Positions 2,211 through 38,668 of a DNA stretch of 64,000 nucleotides are shown piece by piece. Under the pieces are notes generated by a model. That model saw only the letters and a program-made list of their open reading frames with translations. It made no database searches and had not been told where the DNA came from. The DNA is from Macrostomum hystrix (Eukaryota; Animalia; Platyhelminthes). The position numbers were made by a program, and so were the translations under genes. The DNA is taken from assembly GCA_950097015.1 (NCBI GenBank), contig CATNEN010000010.1:1488001-1552000 (forward strand), in the 5' to 3' direction. How positions within the stretch are numbered: the first letter of the stretch is position 1; every line of letters begins with the position of its first letter.

Positions 2211-2821
2211 CCTGCGGCATTCGTTTCGTTTTTCTTCATGGCCCAGTATAATATTTGATGTTATCTAATAATGAAAGAACACAGAGAAATTATATAGGAG
2301 ATAAAGCTCCTAAATGCTAGATTTCGCGCAATGATGAGCCTCATAAAACTAAACGAAATAAATGGCGTTGGTTGTCACTTTTTATTCCTCTAGTGACAAG
2401 CCTAAAACGCACTCCAGACTATCTGTAGAGAACGTCTGCAGTATATTTTAACGAGTATATTTTAACAAGCGCAAGCATTAACTATTTTAGGTCTAAATTA
2501 TTATAATTATCTGTTCCACAGAGACCACTTCAAGTTCTAAAAGAGCTGCTCATTGTAATTATACTCGTATTTCGAGTAACTTACTGTGGTGCTTAGACAT
2601 AGCGGGACTGTGTGACGCCTCGAAAGGCTCCAATGTAAAGAATGTACGAGCGTATTGTTCTTGCAGTTTAGACACAAATACAACAATTTGTGGCCAAGAA
2701 TTTAATGTCTGGGGTCTCGACTTAAAGTCTATATAAGTTTTGGGCTACTATAGGTTAGTATTATAGACCAAAGCGCTGATTTCAATATGCACTTCGCTAT
2801 CAGTAGAAAAGAAAAATATTG

Positions 2822-5800
2822 ATGTCAGAACTTGCGCCTCAAGCGAAGGCGGCGTACGACGGCGACTTGGAACACCTAAAACTTTATATCCGGTCCAGTG
2901 GAATTAAGGGTGCGAACTATGTTGACCAGTCTACTAAAATGAGCCTGCTTAGTCTTGCCGTCATGAGCAACAATCCAGAAGCCGTTCGTTTCCTCTTGAG
3001 CAAGAGAGCTCGCCCTACCTTTTCAAATCCAGGCGGCATGACTCCTATAATGCTTGCTTCTAAATTCTGCAAGCTGGAAGCGGCTCAGGTCCTAATTGAA
3101 AGTAACAAGCTATCAGGCGAAGATCTTTCTGTTAAGGATTCTAAAGAGTATGATGCACTGATGCACTGCTGTTACGAGTACAATCAAAGTAAATCCAAGG
3201 AAGACAGGGAGAAATTTAAAGCGATAGCTAAACTGTTAATCTCTTCGGGGATCGACTTAAAGCAGCGAGACAAGCTAAGACGGAGCGCTTTGCACATCGC
3301 TATCGAAGAAAAATGCGTGGAGATTTCCAAAATTATTATTGAGAGTGACCGCTGTGAGTTGACAATGAAGGACAACAAAAGAGACACACCTCTGATTTTG
3401 GCCTCAAAGAATGGACAAACTAAGATCACCGAACTTCTGGTGGAGCGCCTCAACAATAGTGAAATCGATACAACTAATGCTGAAGGAGACACGGCCTTAC
3501 TGCCGCGGCAGCGCATGGTAATGTGAGGCAGCTGAAGCTCCTACAGATGGCCGGCGCTGACATTTTCCACAGGAACCGCAGAGGCTTGAACGCAATTGGT
3601 GTAGCCCAGGACAAAGCCAATCGTGACGCCATTCGATTCCTGGAGAGGCTTTACAATGATAAGAAAGCGTTAGTTATCTCTGAACGGCTGATTTGCATTT
3701 TGATTTCTAGAACACTTTTTTTCATCACCGAAGAAGACGAAAACGAAAACATATTTTTCACTTCAGGAATTTGATGGTTCGACAGAAGACAAACATGGAA
3801 AGCGGTGAGTCTGTTCACTTCTACAACTACAAGCAACCACTTTAAGCTGAGAAAAAATTCTGTAATAGATTTGGCTTTGAAACTTTCTTGTTTTCTCGTA
3901 ACTAGAACTCCGAGCCTTAAAGAATGCAAATTTAAAACTGAAATTTCTTCAAATAGTTGATGTTGTGAGGTACTCTTTTCATTCGATGGAAATCAATTAT
4001 GAATTTTTGCTCAAAATGATTAAAGTTGTGGATTTCTATTATCTTGAATGTCACAGGGTACAACCTTATTTAAATGCAGCCATTCACATGGTTGAAAATA
4101 CAGTAGTAACAATTGTCTGGGCTGTGTGTAGCTCGTATTACTAATGAAACTCGAAAAACAATTGCAGATCCAGCCTTTTTTGACGAAATGTTTGGCCTAA
4201 TAAAAAATAACATCCGCCAGCAATTCCAAAGCAATCTTTCCACCGTGCTCAACGTTGACGCTCTAAGCGATAAAGAAGGGCATGAATATAGCCTCCTCAT
4301 GGCGGCCGCAAAGCACAACCGCATTCAGCTTATTCAGGACCTAGTGAATGCTGAAGCTAATTTGGACCTCTGCGACAGAAATGGCAAGACGGCTCTTCAC
4401 TACGCCGTTGAAGAAGGCAGTGTTGACTCCGTCCTGAAGTTGCTTAACTGCCAAGCCAATCCTAATATTCAGGAATTTGAACATGGCTACACCCCTCTCA
4501 TGATGTGCTCAAAAACGAAACGCTTTCGAGAAGAAATAGTTCGACATTTTTTAACGTTCAGGGCAGATTTAACCCTGAAATGTCGTGATTCGGCCAATAC
4601 AGCTGCACACTTGGCCGTGGTGCATAACAAGAAAACACTGTTGAACCTGTTACTTGAAGGCAACAGTCATTGTGTGCTTTCGAGCGTAAATGAGCGTAAA
4701 GAAACGCCACTACTCTTGGCTGTCAAACTGGACAAAAAAGAAGCTATTAGAACTCTTGCATTGTATACTTGTAGGTGCCCCGAGCACCAAGCTTGTAACA
4801 CTGAGCACCTTGAGCATTGCGACCTAGATGGGAACACGGCTTTCTCGTTGGCGGCTAGTCTCGGCCATCTCGACATAGTTCAACTGCTGGAGAGGTCGGG
4901 GGCGAACTTCAAACACCGAAATCGATCAGGGATGGAACCCATCGATCTTGCAGGGGAAGCTGGACATTCGCAAGTCGTCGAGTACATTAGCAAGCTGTAA
5001 GTTTTTTGTTCACTTTCGATTTTTTGGGTTGCGTAAATTTACTATTTTAAAGATTTAAAGATACCATTGAATCTCTACAAAAAATGAAGCATTTTAGAAG
5101 AAGATATATAAATTACGTAGTGGCCAACGCAGGCACTCATAGAAATAGGTGGAAAGTCGGTGACGTTAATGTTTCTGTCATGAAATACTAAAGCTCAACA
5201 TAAATTCTAATTTAAATAGGAAGCGAACTTGGCGCTACCCTTCCATGTTGCTACGTAGCAAGAACGAGTACCGTGGCGACTGTGTCTACATCTCCGTCTC
5301 GTCCGACAGCGCTCACGAACTGGCTGTCACATATGATGGGAACAGACTGTTGAACCTCTTCCAAACAAAATTGCGCTTTAAGTTTAGGCCGATGAGCAAT
5401 CCTTCAGCAAAAGAGATGCAGAAATATATGCAGGATATCGCCAATGAGGACCACAGCCGCAAAGCATCCTTCATTTGTGTTGTATCTGCCCACGGTTATA
5501 GCGATGAGGAAACAAAGAGAACCTACATTAAAGGAAGAGATTCCACTGATGCTTCTACCGAGAGTGCCACCAAGCAACTAATCAGTGTGGAGAATCTGAT
5601 CGACCCAATCACAAAATGCGCAACTCTCAAGGGCAAGCCGAAGATCTTCTTCATCCAGTGTTGTCGTTGTCTGCAGTCGGGTCTCCGAGATCGCGCTGTT
5701 CGGACGCCAGCCAGAGGAGCTCGAGGAAACAACCAGAGAGACTTGTCTGACCTACTGCAGGTTTATTCAACTTCGTCCGGTGATGTCGCTTTAAGGACTC

Positions 5801-6012
5801 TTCGTGGAACAGTTTTCATCCAAAAACTTTGCGCGTTCATTGAGAATTACATGGAAAGGCACCACCTTCGAGAGATTATTGACAAACTGGCGGCCTCCAT
5901 GAACGACGAACCTGTGTGTCAGAATCTGTTCCAAACCATAGAAATAAGAGGAAATCTGCCAAAAAAGATGTACTTTCATGATGAAGAATTGCCGAGGGAG
6001 TCTGAATGGTGA
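2822..6012 (+). CDS. Ankyrin-repeat/caspase fusion (~835 aa if a 1-nt frameshift at ~3500 is corrected); catalytic His/Cys retained
   Basis: Exons 2822-3668, 3767-3804, 4168-4996 and 5220-6012 have GT/AG ends and matching phases. Multiple ankyrin motifs (GMTPIMLAS, RSALHIAI, DTPLILAS, GKTALHYAV, GYTPLMMC, ETPLLLAV, GNTAFSLAA). C-terminal caspase motifs ICVVSAHG, LKGKPKIFFIQCCR, GTVFIQKL and KKMYF. The frame slips at TTA CT/GCC GCG GCA (3497-3510). Confidence 0.82.
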
Positions 6013-6753
6013 GAAGGTTAGAAGTTTCAGAAATCTAACTCTTATATACCCTTTGTCGTTTTAAAATAATTCTTTTTCTTTAGCTTTAATGTTCCATTGT
6101 TATATTGTTGAAATTTTACGATTCGCTCTCTCAGTACTGAAAGCTTTGTATCTGTAATAAACCAATTGTAACGTTTTTTAATAATTAGTTTTTTTTATGT
6201 AAACAATAAGGAATCATTCTTTTTGTAATAAAACGAACATTGTATTCCTTCGTGTTATAAAATTTAAATTCGAAATGACGATAAATCATTTCGCTTAAAT
6301 TAACGTATTTTGCACAAGATTGTAACGCACATTTGTTAAAAATGAAGACTGCAAAAGGGTTTAAATACTCGTACACACGAGTTTTGAGGAGGAAAAACAA
6401 GGTATTTTGCACCCGCACGTTCAAATAATAAGAGAGAAGTTCAGATTGAGAATAAACAAGTTTTTCAATTAAGAGAGAGATTCGTGTTGCAATTTTTTTC
6501 TAAACAAGAGAGTTTGAAAATACGAAGATTAGTCGGAGACATAATAAAATAAAACTTACAGACTTACAGAACCCCGCCCTGTAGGATTCGACAAACCAAC
6601 AATTCGTGTGAATTGAAGTTAAGTGGGTATCCTTATCCTCCATCATTAATTCAATTTCTTTCCGGTTCAAGCAGATCTTAAAAGAGTAGAAAAACACTGA
6701 GGCAGAATTTAGACAGAAAAAATAAAACCTAATCGTCTCTATGCATTTTCCAG

Positions 6754-7310
6754 CGAAAGCCGATCTTTTACGTCTTGAATCTGATGCTACCCAGCGTCCT
6801 CTTACTCGTCGTCTCGGCAGTCACGTTCCGCATGCCGCCAGAGTGCGGCGAGCGAATCTCCTTCAGCATCACCATCGTGCTGTCCATGTGCGTGTTCCTG
6901 CAGCTAGCCGACAACTACACGCCAACGCAGAGCGAGTCTGTGCCGCTCATCAGTGAGTATTTTCTGTTTTCAAAAGATAAGGTATTTCAGCTGTTTCATA
7001 GTAGCCTGTTCAGCAAAAAAGCGCTCGAGTTAACAATCGACTCATCCGGCTTCTCTTCCTCAACCGAATGGTTTCTGGTAAATTTGCACCTCAAAAGGTG
7101 GCCGCTTCTAGCGCTACTGGAGTGTCCGATCACACTGGTGCGACTCACAGCGAGATCAAAGTTAATTACAACGAATCGGAGAAGGTGGTGACTTGTGCAG
7201 ACTGGATTTTCTTCTGCACCAACGTGGCGCTCACCGTTGTCATAATAGGCAGCGCCTTCAGCTATATGAGCAGGCTAAGCAACACACGCTGTGTTCAGTC
7301 TAGTCCTTGA
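6754..7310 (+). pseudogene. Orphan 3' module of an nAChR-like gene (copy B): intact M1-M2 exon plus a last exon lacking M3
   Basis: Exon 6754-6952 has both splice sites and encodes RKPIFYVLNLMLPSVLL...QSESVPLI. Downstream, RVNNRLIRLLFLNR...CADWIFF...TRCVQSSP* is present but the M3 segment is deleted. No exons 1-4 are recognisable upstream. Confidence 0.75.
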
Positions 7311-7899
7311 TTTTCAGTGCCAGTTTTCTGAATTTTCTCTTCTTCGTCACTTTGGTTATCGTCGTTAACAATAGCAAGAAACACGTTTAAATGCATATTA
7401 ATCTACGGTTCTACTGACCATCTATCGAGCTATCCTTCCTACACAATTTTGTCAATTTTTATCGTTTCTATGAGGTTTCAATTAGTCTTCAACGCGGCGT
7501 TGAACTCGTTATAATCTGACCATGCAGATGTTAATTTGAGGCAAAACACGAAGCAGAAAATGCGTTTTTACTTCTCGCTGAACAGTTTTGTCTGCAGCTC
7601 TTTTGTCGTCTATTTTTAGGCTGATAAAACGAATTGTTCAATGAGTAGATAAAAAGGTATCCCATGTAATCACCACCATTTTATCGAATACGTAATGATA
7701 TATATATTATATATATATAGATAGATAGATGGATATATATAACGCGCACGGCTGTTTATTGACCATGGTATGGAATGCGGCGAGCACCACACGCACCCTC
7801 CATTATCCCAGCTAACGCTGGTACCCATTTAATAGCTGGGTGAAATGAAGCACAGTTACGTGTCTTGCTTAAGGACACGAATTTTCCAGGTGTCGTACG

Positions 7900-8760
7900 T
7901 TTGGCAATAATGAAGACTGAGACAAGAAGCCAGTTGAAATAGTGAAATCTTTCATTCGAAGCAGGACCTTTACTTTCTTTTAAGTATGCCAAATCCAGAT
8001 GAATACGCTCGAAAAAGAACTTTGTGCCTTTCCCGGAGTGAAGGTTGGAGTTGGTTCGTTTTCTCGAATTCAGTTGACAGTAAGGGCATCGTTGAACAAA
8101 GCTGTTGATCTGGGCATCGATGTAAGGCCACCAGAAGTACTCTCGAGCGAGTCTGATTCGGACTTGGAATGATTCGGCACTGCTGACATTGCCCTGGGTG
8201 CCGTTGCCAGTCTTCTTATGAGTACTCTTCTGTACTGTGGCGATGGTTTGACTCGAATCAGTGGCTTGTGATACAGACTCAGAAAGGAGACTATCCTTAA
8301 CTGCTGTCTCTAGATCCAGAAGCAGTAACTTCTGCTTCAAAAAATTATCGGCCAGCCCAAATATAAACCGAGACAGAATTAGGTCTTCTCGCAAGTCGCC
8401 AAACTCGCACTTGTTGGCCTGGGTCTTCAGTCTCTCCAGAAATCTTGTCACTGACTCACCCTGCATAGTATAAAGTAGATGTCTGTCGTAATGAAGAAGT
8501 CGCTTGGGTTTCAAGTGGCTCAGTATCGCTGCCTTGATGAAGTCAAATGTACACTTAGAATCGTTTAGAATGTCTTCTGGCTGCACAAGTGTTTTGATTA
8601 GTGACAATGCCGCATCTCCACAAGTGGCAAGTAGAACGGCTTTACTTTGGCCAGCTTTTCCCGTTGCGCAAGCGTAAAACCGGAGGCGCTTGAAGTATTG
8701 TTCCACTTCGGGGTAGCACAGCGGCGTCTCCCCCAGTCGGAAGTCGAGCCCGGAAGACAT
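7900..8760 (-). mobile_element. Internally deleted Ty3/Gypsy (K02A2.6-like) LTR retrotransposon remnant: gag joined to an integrase N-terminal fragment
   Basis: ORF 7756-8760 has a gag-like segment (LLATCGDAALSLIKTL...GESVTRFLERLKTQANKCEFGDLREDLILSRFIFGL), then LAREYFWWPYIDAQINSFVQRCPYCQ (integrase zinc-binding region) and FERIHLD. No LTRs or RT found. Confidence 0.78.
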
Positions 8761-9336: not shown

Positions 9337-10220
9337 TTCACAGACTCTTGAACACGCACACACACATACTGAACTGGTACACACTCACTCAGGTGTTTGA
9401 TTCACCGTCGGTAAGTTTGGCGTCTTAAGTGACACAGTTATGCTCTTCCATCTGTATGTACTTGCGTTGCTAGAAATATCTATGGTTCAAGGCTTCATTT
9501 TTGGGAAATTCCATCTTGGTCACATCTGATTTGCATATCGAATTGCCCCCCCGTTTTAGCATGAGAAGTCAGTACAAAAGCCAGTTGTTTCAAGCATAAG
9601 GCATAACGTTTCATGTAAATATAGTATACTCGAGGTAGGTCATAACGTCCTCGCACCAAGCAAGCAGGCAAGAATGCAGCTCTTCATTCTGCTATGCCAT
9701 AACGTCCTTCGCCGGATCAGTGCTAACTGCTTGCACTGATGAAGTCAATCTTCAGAAAGCACAGCTAACAAAATGCTGCGGACACAATGTCCGCAAATAT
9801 TGCCTTCTGATATCCCAGTATGTTTTCTGCTTTCATTTTGTTTGCTCAGATGATCGATGCTTGCTCTGCTCGGCACACAATGGTTTCGATCGATCTGGTC
9901 AACAGAAAGTCTCGCCAAGCGACATTGTATGAAATTATACATGAGTTCATCGCAAGGATAGCCAGTCCATTGCGGGAGAACAGTGGCCTGTAGCATGTGA
10001 TCCGTCTGAACCTGATGATTGGTGCATTGAAACAAAACCTTGGTGTATAGGTGAGGCTTCTCAGTACAGGATTAAATGAATTAAACTTAAAACCAAAGGT
10101 ATAAATAATTGGCTTCCGACTTCTAAAAATGCCATTTTTTATTCTCCTCTGGCTCCGCTAGGAAAGCCTGCACTCTTTCTCAATCAGCAGTTCTACTCAC
10201 AGAGTTGATCTACCACGGCA

Positions 10221-12286
10221 ATGCCATTGCGTCATTCCATCAAGATCATTTGGATGACCTTCTATATGGTTGGTTTTTCAGTAATCGTCTCGGCGTCCGG
10301 CTCTCTGTCACCCGATGAGGTTGTGGCGAAAGCACTGAGCCTGACTACCGACTACAACAGCGCTCTGAGACCACCACCTGACAATGGGACTGCTAATACA
10401 ATCAACATATTTATATACTTTAATAGTCTACTGAAAGTGGTTCGTCGCGACCAAATATTTTCGCAATGTCGTTAGAAAGAAGCATGTTCTAAATGTCTTA
10501 TAAAATATATTCTCACTCTCCCATTGCAGGATTCAACCAGCCAGGAAATAACGACTAAACTTTGGCCTCAATTGGTAAGGCAGCGAAACACGTTAAAATT
10601 ATTTTATTGGACAACCGAACAAATTGTGATACATAGGCCCTGAGAACACTTTCATAAAATGGAAAAAATTGATTATAGTATTTTCATAAGCTTCTAATTG
10701 CCGTAGTGATTATACATTTTCGTTTCTGTGTTTCGAGCATATTAGCAATGTTACTTGCACGTCGTATTCATAAAAGTAATTCATAAAAGTTACGAACGGG
10801 ATTACCAGAGAAAAAGACCCCACTCACTAACACTCAAAGGTGCGAGTGTAGGCCATTTTGATTCGCAAAAAGGCTCCATTTTTTATCCGACCCAAAGTAC
10901 TGGCTGGACAGTCGGCTTCAGTGGCTCGGCAAGTTTAATTCCACGCTGGACAATATCAGCGCGATCTACTTGCCATCCAGCATGGTCTGGCAGCCGGATT
11001 TCATTTTCTATGACGCGTGAGGAACTGACGGCTTATTCATATTCAATTGTCGAGATCCAATCAGATTTGTAATAATTATTTCAGATTGAGCCTTTCCAGC
11101 TACTCAGAAGTCGCCCCGCTCATGGAGGTGAAGAGCACAGGCCAGGTGATGACAGGCAAAGGACAGGTCGTGACGTCCAAGTGCAAGCTGGACATGCGCT
11201 ATTTCCCATTTGACACGCAAGTCTGCCGGCTGGGCCTGGTCAGTGCCCAACAGAGGTCGGGCGTTTTCCGAGTGAAAATCAAGTCGCCCTTTGAGAACGA
11301 TTCTCCAGACGCATTCATCATCAGCAATAACGATTTCTGCATCACGGACATCCAACTGCTTCTGAGCAACCTCTCTGGTTATCAAGCTGCCGCTCTCCAC
11401 ATAAAATTCAAAGTAAGGAAGGCTAGGGGGAGTGGGTGATGCTGTTCGCGCAATAGCTGCGCTGAGCTGTCGGCTGCACATCTGGCCCAATTAGGGCAGG
11501 TTGGCCGTACTATTAGGGACGGTGTGGCCTTTCGGTCAAAAAAGACTTCCATGACTAAAAAAGCAGAAAATAATTTATAATTTTAGCGAATGCCGACTTT
11601 CTACATCATTAACCTGATGCTACCCAGCGTCTTTCTCCTCGCCATCTCCGCCATCGCGTTCTGCCTGCCGCCTGAGTGCGGGGAGAGAATCTCCTTCAGC
11701 ATCACTATCGTGCTGACCATGTGCGTGTTCCTGCAGCTTGTTGGCAACTACACACCAACACAGAGCGAGTCCATACCACTCATCAGTGAGTGAATAGAAT
11801 GAAATATTTAGGGCATTAAAATATGTAAACACCACTTTCCAAAAACAACAAAGACTGTCAGTTGATTGGCAAATAAGGATTGTGAAAATTTCAGCCCACT
11901 ACTTCATGGCTGCGATTCTTCTGACTATGCTGAATGTGCTCTGCAATGCATTCGTGCTCAGCTGTCATTTCAAGGGGCGCGGAAGCGCTGTCGTGAGCAG
12001 TCGGCTCATTCGCGCACTTTTTCTCAACGGACTCGTCACTTGGAAAAGCCCGGAGTGCAAGGTCTCTCAGCAGTCCTCGGAGCTGCAGCCCCAGTCGTCA
12101 TGCCCTGATGGCTCTTGCAGCTTTGATGCTGCCCGCATTAACGAGTGGGGAAGCGTCGTTTGTGCGGCTGATAGAATGTTTTTCTGGATTTATTGCTTTC
12201 TTTCTGCCATGCTTCTTATAGCATCATTCGGCTTCCAGGCAGTGTCCCACAATGGGACTTGTCGTGAAGCCACACTGTATTCTTGA
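10221..12286 (+). CDS. nAChR-like Cys-loop subunit (copy C), intact, ~433 aa
   Basis: Exons 10221-10439, 10530-10574, 10898-11016, 11085-11412, 11587-11785, 11895-12286. Internal exon sizes (45/119/328/199) and phases match copy A. Cys-loop CKLDMRYFPFDTQVC. Confidence 0.93.
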
Positions 12287-12959
12287 AGAACAGTCCTTGA
12301 AGATGCGGCAAATTTCATGTAAATGATGTTGTCAGTAATGATTCCTAAGTTTGAACGAATAATTAAATTGGAAGTAAAAACATGTGCTGGTAACAAGACT
12401 GCAAGTAATAGTCTTTTTATTTCGCAATCGCAGAACTGCGAATTGCAATGTAATTAAATAGAATGAGAATGAATAGAATATAATGGAATGGAATGGAATT
12501 AAATCGGGCAAGTATCCGTTGCGGAACATTGCCTTGACCTTGAACGGTCTCGGTCTGCCAGCGCGAGGTTCGTTCCCCACTTTTAGTGTGTTTCAACTGT
12601 CACTGAATTTTCTGTCACCGTCGTCTCTGCCAGAGAACTATCTGGTGCTAAGGAGCTGAGACGCCCGCGACTGTTCAGAGGTCGACTAGCTACAAAAGCG
12701 CTGTCTGACGAAAGTAGTCCCAAAATCATCAAAATCTACACCAGAAAAGCCTGTTGCAATTTGTAGCCACTCGTCCTGTACTGTTGGAATTAAAAAAAAC
12801 ATTTTTTAAGCAATAAAAGATCAACTATTTCTCAGATATTTCCTAACTTGGCTTCACAAGAGATCAATCTTGAGAGTTTTTCAGGAGTTTCAGAATATAT
12901 ATCGCCATATTATCGCCATGCTTGAGTTCTCGCCATCTAAAGTGCATGGAAACGCTCAA

Positions 12960-35522: not shown

Positions 35523-37151
35523 CTATCGGAACAGCAGTTGCTTGTCTAGACTGTGCTGGACCTCAGTCAGCAGCGTTGGCTCCACGCAGCCGTCAGCTTG
35601 GCTAGACATCGAAATAGAAGCGGCATGGAGACGCTCCCCGGCGCTGAGGAACAACCGACCGAAGTCGGCGTGCTCGGCCTCGGTGTCCAGTGCGCGACGC
35701 AGGCGCCGTAAAAATTCTGTGAGGCGACCGCAGCTGCCAGAATTGCTGACGCAGGCATAGGCCAGTAGACAGTCGGGCTGGCTGGGCTCCGGTCTCGTCG
35801 GGCCGGGCCCTCGGCTGCGCGACGCTGCCGCCAGCAGAAACAAGAAGAGCTTCGGCTTGCCGGCCAAACTGGGGCAGGCGGCAGGCGAGAAGCAGTCCAC
35901 CAGCTGGCCGATGTCAGTCGGTCGGCCGTCGAAACCGACGACGCCGCCGCCGAGGCCGTAGCCAATAAATGCGAACACGAGCAGGTCAGCGGCGGAGTGA
36001 TCGGCAGAAGCGAGACGCTGCGCACGGACCAGAAGGTCACCACCGGTGAGACCAACCGCGGGCCGGATTAGTAGCCGGAGGTCGCTAAAAGTGTCGGTAA
36101 GGAGCGCGAGTCGCTCATCGGCTCCGTTCAGGGCAGGAAAGTCGAATTCGTGCGCAAATCGGGCGCAGTTCGCTAGCAGACAGATGCCACGCGGCCGCGC
36201 TGCACTTGGGTAGATTCCAGATGGCAGCGCCGAGCGCGGTCGGCAAGGCGCTAATGAATTCATTCTCCGTGTTGACTGCCGGCGCAATGTCAATGCTTGC
36301 TTGGAAGCGGCCGCTGCAGCTGCTGTGGTGGCTGTACTGGACCGTCGACGCTCAGAAATTCGGCGACTTAAAAAAATGGGGCGTTATTTGTTGACCTCTC
36401 GTTGTGTCGTGCTACTGTAGGTGAAGGCAAAAGCTACTAACCTTCGCAGAAGAGTCTCAAGACACACAAGCAGCTCCGGACGGCCCCTGGCCAGGGCGAG
36501 CGCGGTGCCCTCCTCGGACACGTGCTCGAGGTCGGCGCCGCGCTCCGCCAGCATCTCAATCAGTTTCGGTTGGCCCCCAACAGAAACTGCTAGCGTTAGC
36601 GGAGTGTGCCGACCGTGGAGTTCGCAGCTGACGGGATCAATATCGGCACCAACCTCCAGGAGGCGCTGCGCGATGGAGACTCGACCGAAGGTGCAGCACA
36701 GATGCAGCGGCGCCAGACCGTCACCGTTGCGCCGGTCCGGATCGGCACCGGCCTCCAGCAGCAGCGCCGCTGAGGCCTCGTCATCATTCTCAATGCACCA
36801 GAAGAGTGCAGAGTAGCCAGCCGAGCTGAAGGCGTTAAGCCGAGCGCCCGACTCGGCGAGCAGGCGTAGGACGCCGCGACTTCGCTGCTGCGCCGCCAGC
36901 AGGGCAGCCGTGCAGCCAAGCTCGCGGTCGCGTACATCCAGCGCGGCGCCGTGAGCAATGAGAAGCCGCGCCGCCTCCAACTGGTCGGTCATGGCGGCTG
37001 CCATCAGGGCGGTCCGGTGAAATTCGCGCCGAGTGGCGCTGTCAACATCCAGCCCGGCGTCGAGCTGAAGTCGCATAGTGGCAAGATCACCGCGTCCAGC
37101 AGCCAGGTAGAATTCATCCACTTCGTCTGCACTGAACTGGCGTGAAGGCAT
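35523..37151 (-). CDS. Ankyrin-repeat/pseudo-caspase fusion, ~517 aa, catalytic His and Cys lost
   Basis: Exon 37151-36442 (ankyrin repeats HRTALMAAA, GCTAALLAA, GYSALFWCI, GLAPLHLCC, RHTPLTLAV) splices via a 75-nt GT-AG intron (36441-36367, phase 2) to exon 36366-35523. That exon has a caspase-fold pattern: PRGICLLAN, ADHSAADLLVFAFIGYG, CPSLAGKPKLFLFLLAA, SLDKQLLF. The 5' end could extend further. Confidence 0.85.
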
Positions 37152-38668
37152 GCTGCTGAGAACCTCTCCTAAATTCGGTTGCAATTTAAATCTCGAGTTA
37201 CTTTTGCTTTCGCGAATTCAAGAAACGATGGAGCTGTTCGCAATTGGTTTCCGCCAAGCAAGATTCGCTCAATGCATGTAGCACTGACTTGTTGAGGTAC
37301 AATGATTACAAGATTACATGCACAGTTCAGTGAGCTCACCTAGCCGACCAGTCGCGAATGCGGTTGCCCAGAATGTGTTAGAGCTACGTCGCCTCTTTTA
37401 TGCGAATTCTGTTCACTTGACAGTCAACAAGTTGTAGAGCTTATTTATAGCAAGTAAAGCTTGGTGTCTATTACACACAGCAATTCAGTCTAGAAGCAAC
37501 GCGCAAGCTTATTGAGTTCAGATATGCGAGTTTTCTCACAGAAAAAAGCTCTATAACCCAGTTGGCCTGTCTAGAAATGGCAGTTAATGCGTGGCGGTGA
37601 AGTGATTCTGTCTCGCCCTGAATAGACTGCCAACTGCACAGACGGTCCAAACTAACAGAAGCAGTTGATACAGAATACACGACGGAGAGAGCTCAGAATT
37701 AGATTTGAGCATACATCTGATTCATAGCACAGAACAATAGAGAAACAAGTAAACCTGTCAGGTGGGTTGCGACAGGACCTGGAGAGCCTGCTCATGGCAG
37801 AGGGCCGATGCTTATCTACGTTGCTAGCTCAGAATTGGGCGCTGTTAAAGCTTTGCTTTGCAGATTACTGAGTTCATCTTTGCAGAGCAGAGACCCTTGA
37901 CCAAAAAATAAATTGGCCACCCCGAGGGCCGCTTCGTTTAGCCTCGCGGGATGAAGAGAAGATGCAAAATCTGGTTGAGAACCGTAACAACACTAACAAA
38001 CGACCCACTTAGGGTCCCCATTGTATCAAAAGCTTTGACAAATTACGGTTTCTGTCATCATCTCTCGCTAGTACAATCATCTAAGCAAGGGAATGCTGCA
38101 AATTTAACCTGGGTTAGTAAAGTGAATATTAATAAAGCAACATCAACTGGACATCAACTGAAAATACTACTATTAACTCATTGCCGTCCGATGACACAAT
38201 GGAGAGGCTTGTCGACCATTCCGCAAATCCCAAAAAAATGCGCAAGTAGCCATGGCGCGGTGCCGTTCAGGGAGGTCTGTTGATCCTTATTTCAGTTGGG
38301 AAGGAGGGAGGGGCTCGTTTGTTGGCCCGTAGGAACAGCAGCGAACTGTTTCCAGTCGAATAAGATGCCGCACAGATAACCTGCTAGGAATGGCCTCTAA
38401 AAAACTTAGAACTATGTGCTATTCTACGCATTTTTATACGTCTAACATTAGCGAAATTCTAAAATAGTAACTCGAGAAGGAGAGCTGGTACAATTTTGAT
38501 CCACAGACAAAAGCCAGCGGTCAGCCAAGAATGAAGGCTCTCGTGAGCAGGCTATTCTGACGTCTGATTTATTTTACTTCATGAGAAGATTGAGAACACA
38601 GCGCAGTGCTCGTCATAAACCAACAGACAAATCTAATTGGCCAGTTGAACAGTTGCTTTAAAGACGCC

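Follow-up and report, generated by a model that had tools for sequence, protein, structure and literature searches.

A transcribed ankyrin-repeat caspase gene of the flatworm Macrostomum hystrix with a glutamate at an S1-pocket arginine position and a probably segregating null allele

Para- and metacaspases, proteases of clan CD, have an acidic S1 pocket and are specific for Arg or Lys. Caspases bind an aspartate at P1 through a basic pocket formed by Arg179, Gln283 and Arg341 (caspase-1 numbering), whereas in para- and metacaspases the Gln283 position is Asp, the Arg341 position is Asp or Glu, and Arg179 aligns to a Leu (PMC2064784). Among flatworms, caspases with an ankyrin-repeat prodomain (ANK caspases) were described by Horkan et al. 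2024 (PMC11463336) as a monophyletic group, being the sister of DED caspases and limited to parasitic species, a kinase-prodomain caspase being all that they note for Macrostomum lignano. In these proteins, such as the 'subfamily C14A unassigned peptidase' of Schistosoma mansoni and the 'Caspase-8' of Echinococcus and Taenia, an all-ankyrin prodomain replaces CARD or DED. In this study, a gene of the same general build was investigated at positions 2822 to 6012 (+ strand) of a stretch of 64,000 nucleotides from Macrostomum hystrix, hereafter the window (C10:1488001-1552000, eukaryotic in character with GT..AG introns, from an assembly of 220 Mb in 42 contigs). The ankyrin-caspase architecture is already published for flatworms; the host here is free-living whereas those above are parasitic, and the parasite proteins keep QACRG and the S1 Arg, which this one does not. 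What is new is a divergent tandem lineage, a defining residue that has gone from Arg to Glu as a derived change, and a probably segregating null allele.

We put the probability at roughly 55% that the locus encodes an expressed, fast-evolving ankyrin caspase in which the catalytic dyad is kept, the S1 pocket is changed and recognition of P1 Asp is weakened or altered, and that the gene is dispensable. The locus is a transcribed four-exon gene with two ankyrin-repeat blocks and a C-terminal caspase domain. On the + strand, one ankyrin-rich open reading frame (ORF) runs from the ATG at 2822, a second ankyrin-rich one covers 4168-4996, and a caspase-like one covers 5220-6012. Transcript evidence came from contigs of four public runs (X2, X3, X5 and X6, from two studies), which skip the introns as expected of transcriptomes and were compared over 2400-6500, and the gene was searched exon by exon, exon 1 being taken as two pieces flanking a frameshift. 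The parts of the gene are the following.

2822 to 3668, + strand: exon 1, with the start codon at 2822, ankyrin block 1 (about 7-8 repeats; Pfam Ank) and the frameshift site inside; spanned from 2865 to 3668 by X2 and collinear with residues 4-282 of the M. lignano protein P0164
3669 to 3766, + strand: intron 1, 98 nucleotides, GT..AG; joint 3668/3767 in X2 and X5
3767 to 3804, + strand: exon 2, a 38-nucleotide micro-exon linking both ankyrin blocks; in X2 and X5
3805 to 4167, + strand: intron 2, 363 nucleotides, GT..AG; in X2 and X5
4168 to 4996, + strand: exon 3, ankyrin block 2
4997 to 5219, + strand: intron 3, 223 nucleotides, GT..AG; joint 4996/5220 in X2 and X3
5220 to 6012, + strand: exon 4, holding the complete caspase domain with both its large and its small subunit; stop codon at 6010-6012
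6013 to 6468, + strand: 3' untranslated region of at least 456 nucleotides; X3 is unbroken over 5220-6468

All three junctions predicted by the first-pass annotation (3668/3767, 3804/4168 and 4996/5220) occur in spliced transcript contigs with GT..AG ends and good splice-site letters, including the joint of 4996 to 5220, on which the link between ankyrin repeats and caspase had been made to depend. The second junction reads 3803/4167 in X2 and X5, and a cut one place on (3804/4168) fits equally. A loose end of X5 at 5220 carries the final letters of exon 3. The gene upstream terminates at 2441, where a transcript contig has a poly(A) loose end, and the transcript therefore starts between 2441 and 2865. 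The annotated four-exon layout stands as well, while the exon phases given with it (2,1,2) hold only past the frameshift, as the frame of exon 1 is broken in the assembly.

The identity of the C-terminal domain was supported by several comparisons. Exon 4 is matched by Peptidase_C14 (PF00656) at an E value of 1.4e-27 (97.3 bits against a cutoff of 21.4), and phmmer against the PDB sequences reached caspase-3 at 1e-15. An AlphaFold model of the domain, made with an alignment of 56 sequences, obtained a predicted local distance difference test score (pLDDT) of 90.9 and a predicted template-modelling score (pTM) of 0.90; Foldseek placed this model with caspase-7, -3 and -8 (probability 1.0, TM 0.68-0.84), so model and structural matches agree on the caspase fold that had been proposed from the letters alone. 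The residues that matter for catalysis and for P1 recognition are as follows, with counts taken over the 56-sequence alignment.

5317 to 5319, + strand: Glu at the large-subunit S1 Arg position (caspase-1 Arg179, caspase-3 Arg64), where 49 of 56 have Arg
5491 to 5493, + strand: catalytic His (SAHG), aligned to caspase-3 His121; 55 of 56 have His here
5656 to 5670, + strand: QCCRC pentapeptide, aligned to caspase-3 QACRG; the nucleophile Cys (5662-5664) corresponds to Cys163 and its column is invariant
5794 to 5796, + strand: small-subunit S1 Arg (caspase-1 Arg341, caspase-3 Arg207); Arg in 50 of 56

The His and nucleophile Cys codons named by the first-pass annotation are borne out both by the caspase-3 alignment and by the larger one, and the small-subunit Arg that it reported is found at its expected place, the segment ALRTLRGTVFIQ being aligned by phmmer to the Arg207 segment of caspase-3. 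The Gln column of the S1 pocket, kept in 48 of the 56 caspases, is kept here too. In comparison with human caspase-3, -7 and -8 (4jr0, 1f1j, 4ps0), the fold is the same and the His-Gly, the Gln, the Cys and the small-subunit Arg are in register, whereas identity is about 22-24%, QCCRC stands against QACRG or QACQG, Glu stands against Arg64, the L1 loop is much shorter, an extra insert follows the His, and a prodomain of 570 residues is made of ankyrin repeats.

The closest relatives of the gene are few. A HMMER scan of 1.84 billion representatives returned only two proteins below 1e-30 (64% and 48% identity), both from M. lignano and with full-length forms of 829 (P0164) and 823 residues (P0151), and a word-index search with the caspase region of the ortholog gave M. 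lignano matches only. The same kind of search with the caspase exon, under a length filter by which long proteins are left out, gave no match. The ortholog is P0164 (BOX15_Mlig019599g2; UniProt A0A1I8JJC9, an 'ANK_REP_REGION domain-containing protein', is a shorter form of it), which follows exons 1, 3 and 4 in collinear order with identities of 50-62% (50% for exon 3 against residues 295-563) and has the same two ankyrin blocks and caspase domain. Like the M. hystrix gene, it stands downstream in a tandem pair of genes, and it shares with the M. hystrix protein a much shortened L1 loop (in the model, the strand extends to residue 25 and the helix begins at residue 30), a 17-residue insert after the catalytic His and a basic, Arg-rich intersubunit linker, all of which are traits of the clade. 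The differences are that P0164 has the S1 Arg and QACRC, with no frameshift recorded, whereas the M. hystrix gene has Glu and QCCRC.

In the first-pass annotation the large-subunit S1 Arg appeared to be replaced, and this agrees with our data: the pocket reads Glu/Gln/Arg in place of the basic Arg/Gln/Arg. The X2, X3 and X5 contigs show no difference at the Glu codon or the pentapeptide. The ortholog has Arg at the Glu column, in a stretch aligned without gaps (HRVAIEYD, against HELAVTYD here), and since it keeps both this Arg and QACRC, the Glu and the extra Cys are derived in M. hystrix. With the catalytic machinery kept, a Glu/Gln/Arg pocket combined with a much shortened L1 loop would be expected to weaken or change the recognition of P1 Asp, and with one of the two S1 arginines turned into Glu, the earlier suggestion that the enzyme is maybe not strictly Asp-specific is a fair one. 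It can be argued that the protein is nevertheless an ordinary Asp-specific caspase, in which the Glu is tolerated, or for which the shortened L1 loop has been misaligned by one residue. P1 Asp could be bound by the Arg that remains, by the Gln and by basic residues close by, such as the second Arg in LRTLRG; a clade deletion just before the column lowers the certainty of the alignment; the paralog P0151 has Arg one position earlier; about 12% of related caspases lack Arg in the column; and conserved Asp residues in the intersubunit linker (NQRD, common to the ortholog) could be self-processing sites. We nonetheless regard this explanation as quite improbable, given that the ortholog aligns gaplessly with its Arg exactly at the Glu position, that no Arg adjoins the Glu, and that Arg179 is one of the three residues by which the basic S1 pocket is defined (PMC2064784).

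The replaced Arg does not turn the protein into a para- or metacaspase. Likenesses to these are that one of the positions forming S1 is acidic and that the intersubunit linker is rich in Arg; the difference is that Gln and Arg are retained here, and the pocket is accordingly mixed rather than acidic. By its sequence the protein is to be classed as a true caspase (C14A). A more far-reaching version of the reading we prefer is that the intact allele encodes an active animal caspase whose P1 preference has shifted off Asp through the mixed Glu/Gln/Arg pocket and the truncated L1 loop, belonging to a fast-evolving, ankyrin-scaffolded immunity or conflict pair, with the null allele as a presence/absence polymorphism. 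We hold this to be rather doubtful; if it were true, it would be a natural case of a true caspase, and not a para- or metacaspase, having left Asp specificity.

The pentapeptide also departs from the canonical QACxG. Among the 56 aligned sequences, position 2 is Cys in six and position 5 is other than Gly in nine, and the combination QCCRC is unique among 151 related proteins. QCCRG is found in 9 of these 151, so an adjacent Cys pair is not unusual. The ortholog has QACRC and P0151 has QACRT, by which the non-Gly fifth residue is older than the Glu and the extra Cys. The proposal of the first-pass annotation that the extra Cys residues could confer redox sensitivity is speculative: QCC is no rarity, and the fifth position is a Cys in the ortholog too. 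The top Foldseek match is titled 'designed redox-controlled caspase-7', which reflects the shared fold and is not redox evidence.

The second characteristic of the locus is a frameshift in exon 1, which the first-pass annotation had overlooked, as it had the dead tandem twin, the fast evolution of the pair and the published flatworm family (PMC11463336). In the assembly, the frame that starts at the ATG stops at a TGA, the ankyrin reading resumes in the next frame from about 3496, and tblastn with the M. lignano ortholog places the frame switch at 3493-3499.

3496 to 3498, + strand: polymorphic one-nucleotide indel; TT at 3497-3498 in the assembly and X6, an extra T behind 3496 (TTT) in X2
3524 to 3526, + strand: premature TGA of the assembly allele, closing an ORF of 2819-3526 with a predicted ankyrin-only product of 234 residues

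With its extra T, the X2 contig (2390 nucleotides, depth 11, the highest seen) continues as GDTAFTAAAAHGN, which is a regular ankyrin repeat, and the entire coding sequence that it covers, from 2865, is open. X6 (3331-3530), from a different study, is without the extra T, as is the assembly. X2 represents a separate haplotype with 15 substitutions relative to the assembly, whereas X3, X5 and X6 are identical to the assembly at all positions that they span. Read most simply, there are an intact and a null allele, both of them transcribed, and the null allele probably segregates. Could the frameshift instead be an assembly error, every real copy of the gene being intact? The site is a short T run and the best-covered contig carries the extra T; as the depth of X6 is only 2.5, some small chance is kept for the deletion being an error. 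This is very unlikely all the same, as X6 agrees with the assembly from an independent study, X2 is the other haplotype, and the assembly-matching contigs never show an extra T. A tiny intron bridging the frameshift was also considered and rejected, since the only candidate, a GT..AG of 14 nucleotides at 3518-3531, is far too short, and both X2 and X6 run through it. The allele of the assembly itself is disabled, and the gene as a whole does not have the traits of a unitary pseudogene, as the X2 haplotype is open and the nonsynonymous divergence (dN) of 0.30 between species is far below the synonymous divergence (dS) of about 2.

The gene belongs to a tandem pair. In M. lignano, the P0151 and P0164 genes lie in tandem in the same orientation, both intact (locus 5293-8035 and 10001-12850). 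In M. hystrix, the upstream twin lies at C10:1484500-1487051, just outside the window; orthologous to P0151, with which it shares 66% identity over the large subunit, it has in-frame stops, frame breaks and ESCRV replacing the pentapeptide. Judged from these lesions the upstream twin is dead in M. hystrix, and by the orthology of both members the pair evidently arose before M. lignano and M. hystrix separated. The dN between them was 0.30 for the caspase exon and 0.38 for exon 1, against 0.02-0.10 for the caspase exons of the canonical ANK caspase in the same two genomes, and the proteins of the tandem pair have thus evolved 3-15 times faster. Because dS was saturated in all comparisons (2.1 for the caspase exon and undefined for exon 1), only dN itself and the bound that dN is much smaller than dS are usable. 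The terminal branch of the M. hystrix caspase in the tree (0.22) is not longer than that of the ortholog (0.35), and the Pfam score of the caspase exon equals those of the M. lignano orthologs. Taken from these sequence comparisons, a dN well below the saturated dS, a branch that is not lengthened and a Pfam score that is kept indicate long-term constraint on the caspase exon.

A serious though unlikely alternative is that the gene is decaying: the Arg-to-Glu change would have cost the protease its useful activity, the locus would be on its way to the state of its upstream twin, and the remaining role would be non-catalytic, as an ankyrin scaffold, or none. This would suit a frameshift allele that an independent transcript contig has in common with the assembly, a tandem twin that is already dead, and a pocket Arg swapped for the opposite charge. 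Of all the transcripts, though, that of the intact haplotype has the greatest depth, and it retains the His, the Cys, the Gln and the second Arg; moreover, the constraint described above, in branch length, in dN relative to dS and in a Pfam score as high as that of M. lignano, is not what decay would predict. If the copy is merely decaying, it is a case of ordinary gene-family turnover.

A caspase with its dyad kept and its pocket changed remains the explanation that we favor. In such an enzyme, the ankyrin blocks would replace CARD or DED as a protein-binding platform that gathers zymogens for proximity-induced activation. The null allele suggests that the gene is dispensable in M. hystrix, and dispensability would fit a fast-evolving, possibly immunity-related paralog rather than a core component of apoptosis. 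Several points weigh against this explanation. The initiator-like recruitment role of ANK prodomains is a hypothesis of the literature. The equivalence of the Glu to the S1 Arg comes from sequence alignment in a region with a clade deletion of 8-12 residues. Outside the assembly, the deleted allele is backed by one transcript contig, whose depth is 2.5. The differences between the haplotypes comprise nine nonsynonymous and six synonymous changes, with a ratio of nonsynonymous to synonymous polymorphism (pN/pS) of 0.42, and all three of those in the caspase exon are nonsynonymous; one of them, 5672 T>A in the X2 allele, changes Leu to Gln at the residue directly after QCCRC and beside the catalytic Cys. 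Such a pattern, which also speaks for decay, is compatible with recent relaxation and does not fit a new function.

The ankyrin region was characterized separately. Pfam Ank families (Ank_2) match exon 1 (6e-26) and exon 3 (6e-35). A repeat profile made from the gene's own repeats gave five to six units per block, together with caps and a unit spanning the frameshift, and the AlphaFold model of block 2 (pLDDT 88.9) displays seven helix pairs with an N-terminal helical cap. In total about 14-16 repeats are obtained, which fits the 12-15 that had been counted by the first-pass annotation. A Cys/His-rich insert, CRCPEHQACNTEHLEHC (4770-4820), lies inside a repeat of block 2 with low model confidence and without a counterpart in the M. 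lignano ortholog; it may bind a metal or be no more than a loop.

With regard to its place among caspases, the M. hystrix protein is an ANK caspase in that it comes from a flatworm and has an ankyrin prodomain N-terminal to the caspase, the two being spliced together in transcripts. A search with M. lignano P0116 (599 residues, Ank plus C14) found the ANK caspases of Schistosoma, Trichobilharzia, monogeneans and cestodes at about 38% identity, and in the maximum likelihood tree P0116 joins these parasite proteins (99/95) beside the DED caspases. The canonical ANK caspase of M. hystrix lies at C38:33358036-33361033 and is 86-91% identical to P0116, with a caspase core that hardly differs between the two species. 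The gene studied here, together with P0164 and P0151, forms a separate, long-branched clade (100/99). Forcing all flatworm ANK caspases into one clade cost 22 log-likelihood units, with a p value of 0.053 in the approximately unbiased (AU) test, by which a single origin is neither established nor firmly rejected, in a comparison that involves long branches. Together with the ortholog from M. lignano and the canonical copy on C38, the M. hystrix gene means that free-living macrostomids carry ANK caspases of at least two lineages, and the origin of the family can therefore not be tied to parasitism. The locus is also a natural experiment bearing on the definition of a caspase, in which an S1 Arg has gone to the opposite charge with the dyad kept and an ortholog retaining the Arg, and intact and null alleles are both available in culture.

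The tree further grouped the clade with the metagenomic caspases P0037, P0048 and P0114 (98/95). The two stems that meet in this grouping are long, so it may reflect long-branch attraction, and we did not use it. The caspase ORFs of P0037 and P0048, the closest relatives of the clade outside Macrostomum, are each followed directly downstream by NB-ARC/NACHT-LRR ORFs, on contigs with a GC content of 45%, and at least one of these caspase ORFs starts at a TTG just behind a polypyrimidine-AG; they may be exons of a eukaryote, possibly of a caspase-NLR gene, and not bacterial genes.

Other caspase-like sequences were noticed in the window and in the two Macrostomum genomes. An ankyrin plus caspase-like stretch on the - strand of the window (35715-37163) has 26-28% identity to M. 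lignano P0051 and P0116. P0051 (2049 residues) is an ankyrin protein with an internal caspase domain, and its ortholog is present in the M. hystrix genome (tree support 100/100). P0110 of M. lignano (1060 residues) is a long caspase with a protein-kinase prodomain and a weak ankyrin match. The gene itself is flanked on both sides by + strand exons (1854-2210 and 6775-7191) with matches to Pfam PF02932, the transmembrane region of the Cys-loop or neurotransmitter-gated ion channels, at 7e-16 in the downstream exon and, weakly, at 1e-3 in the upstream exon.

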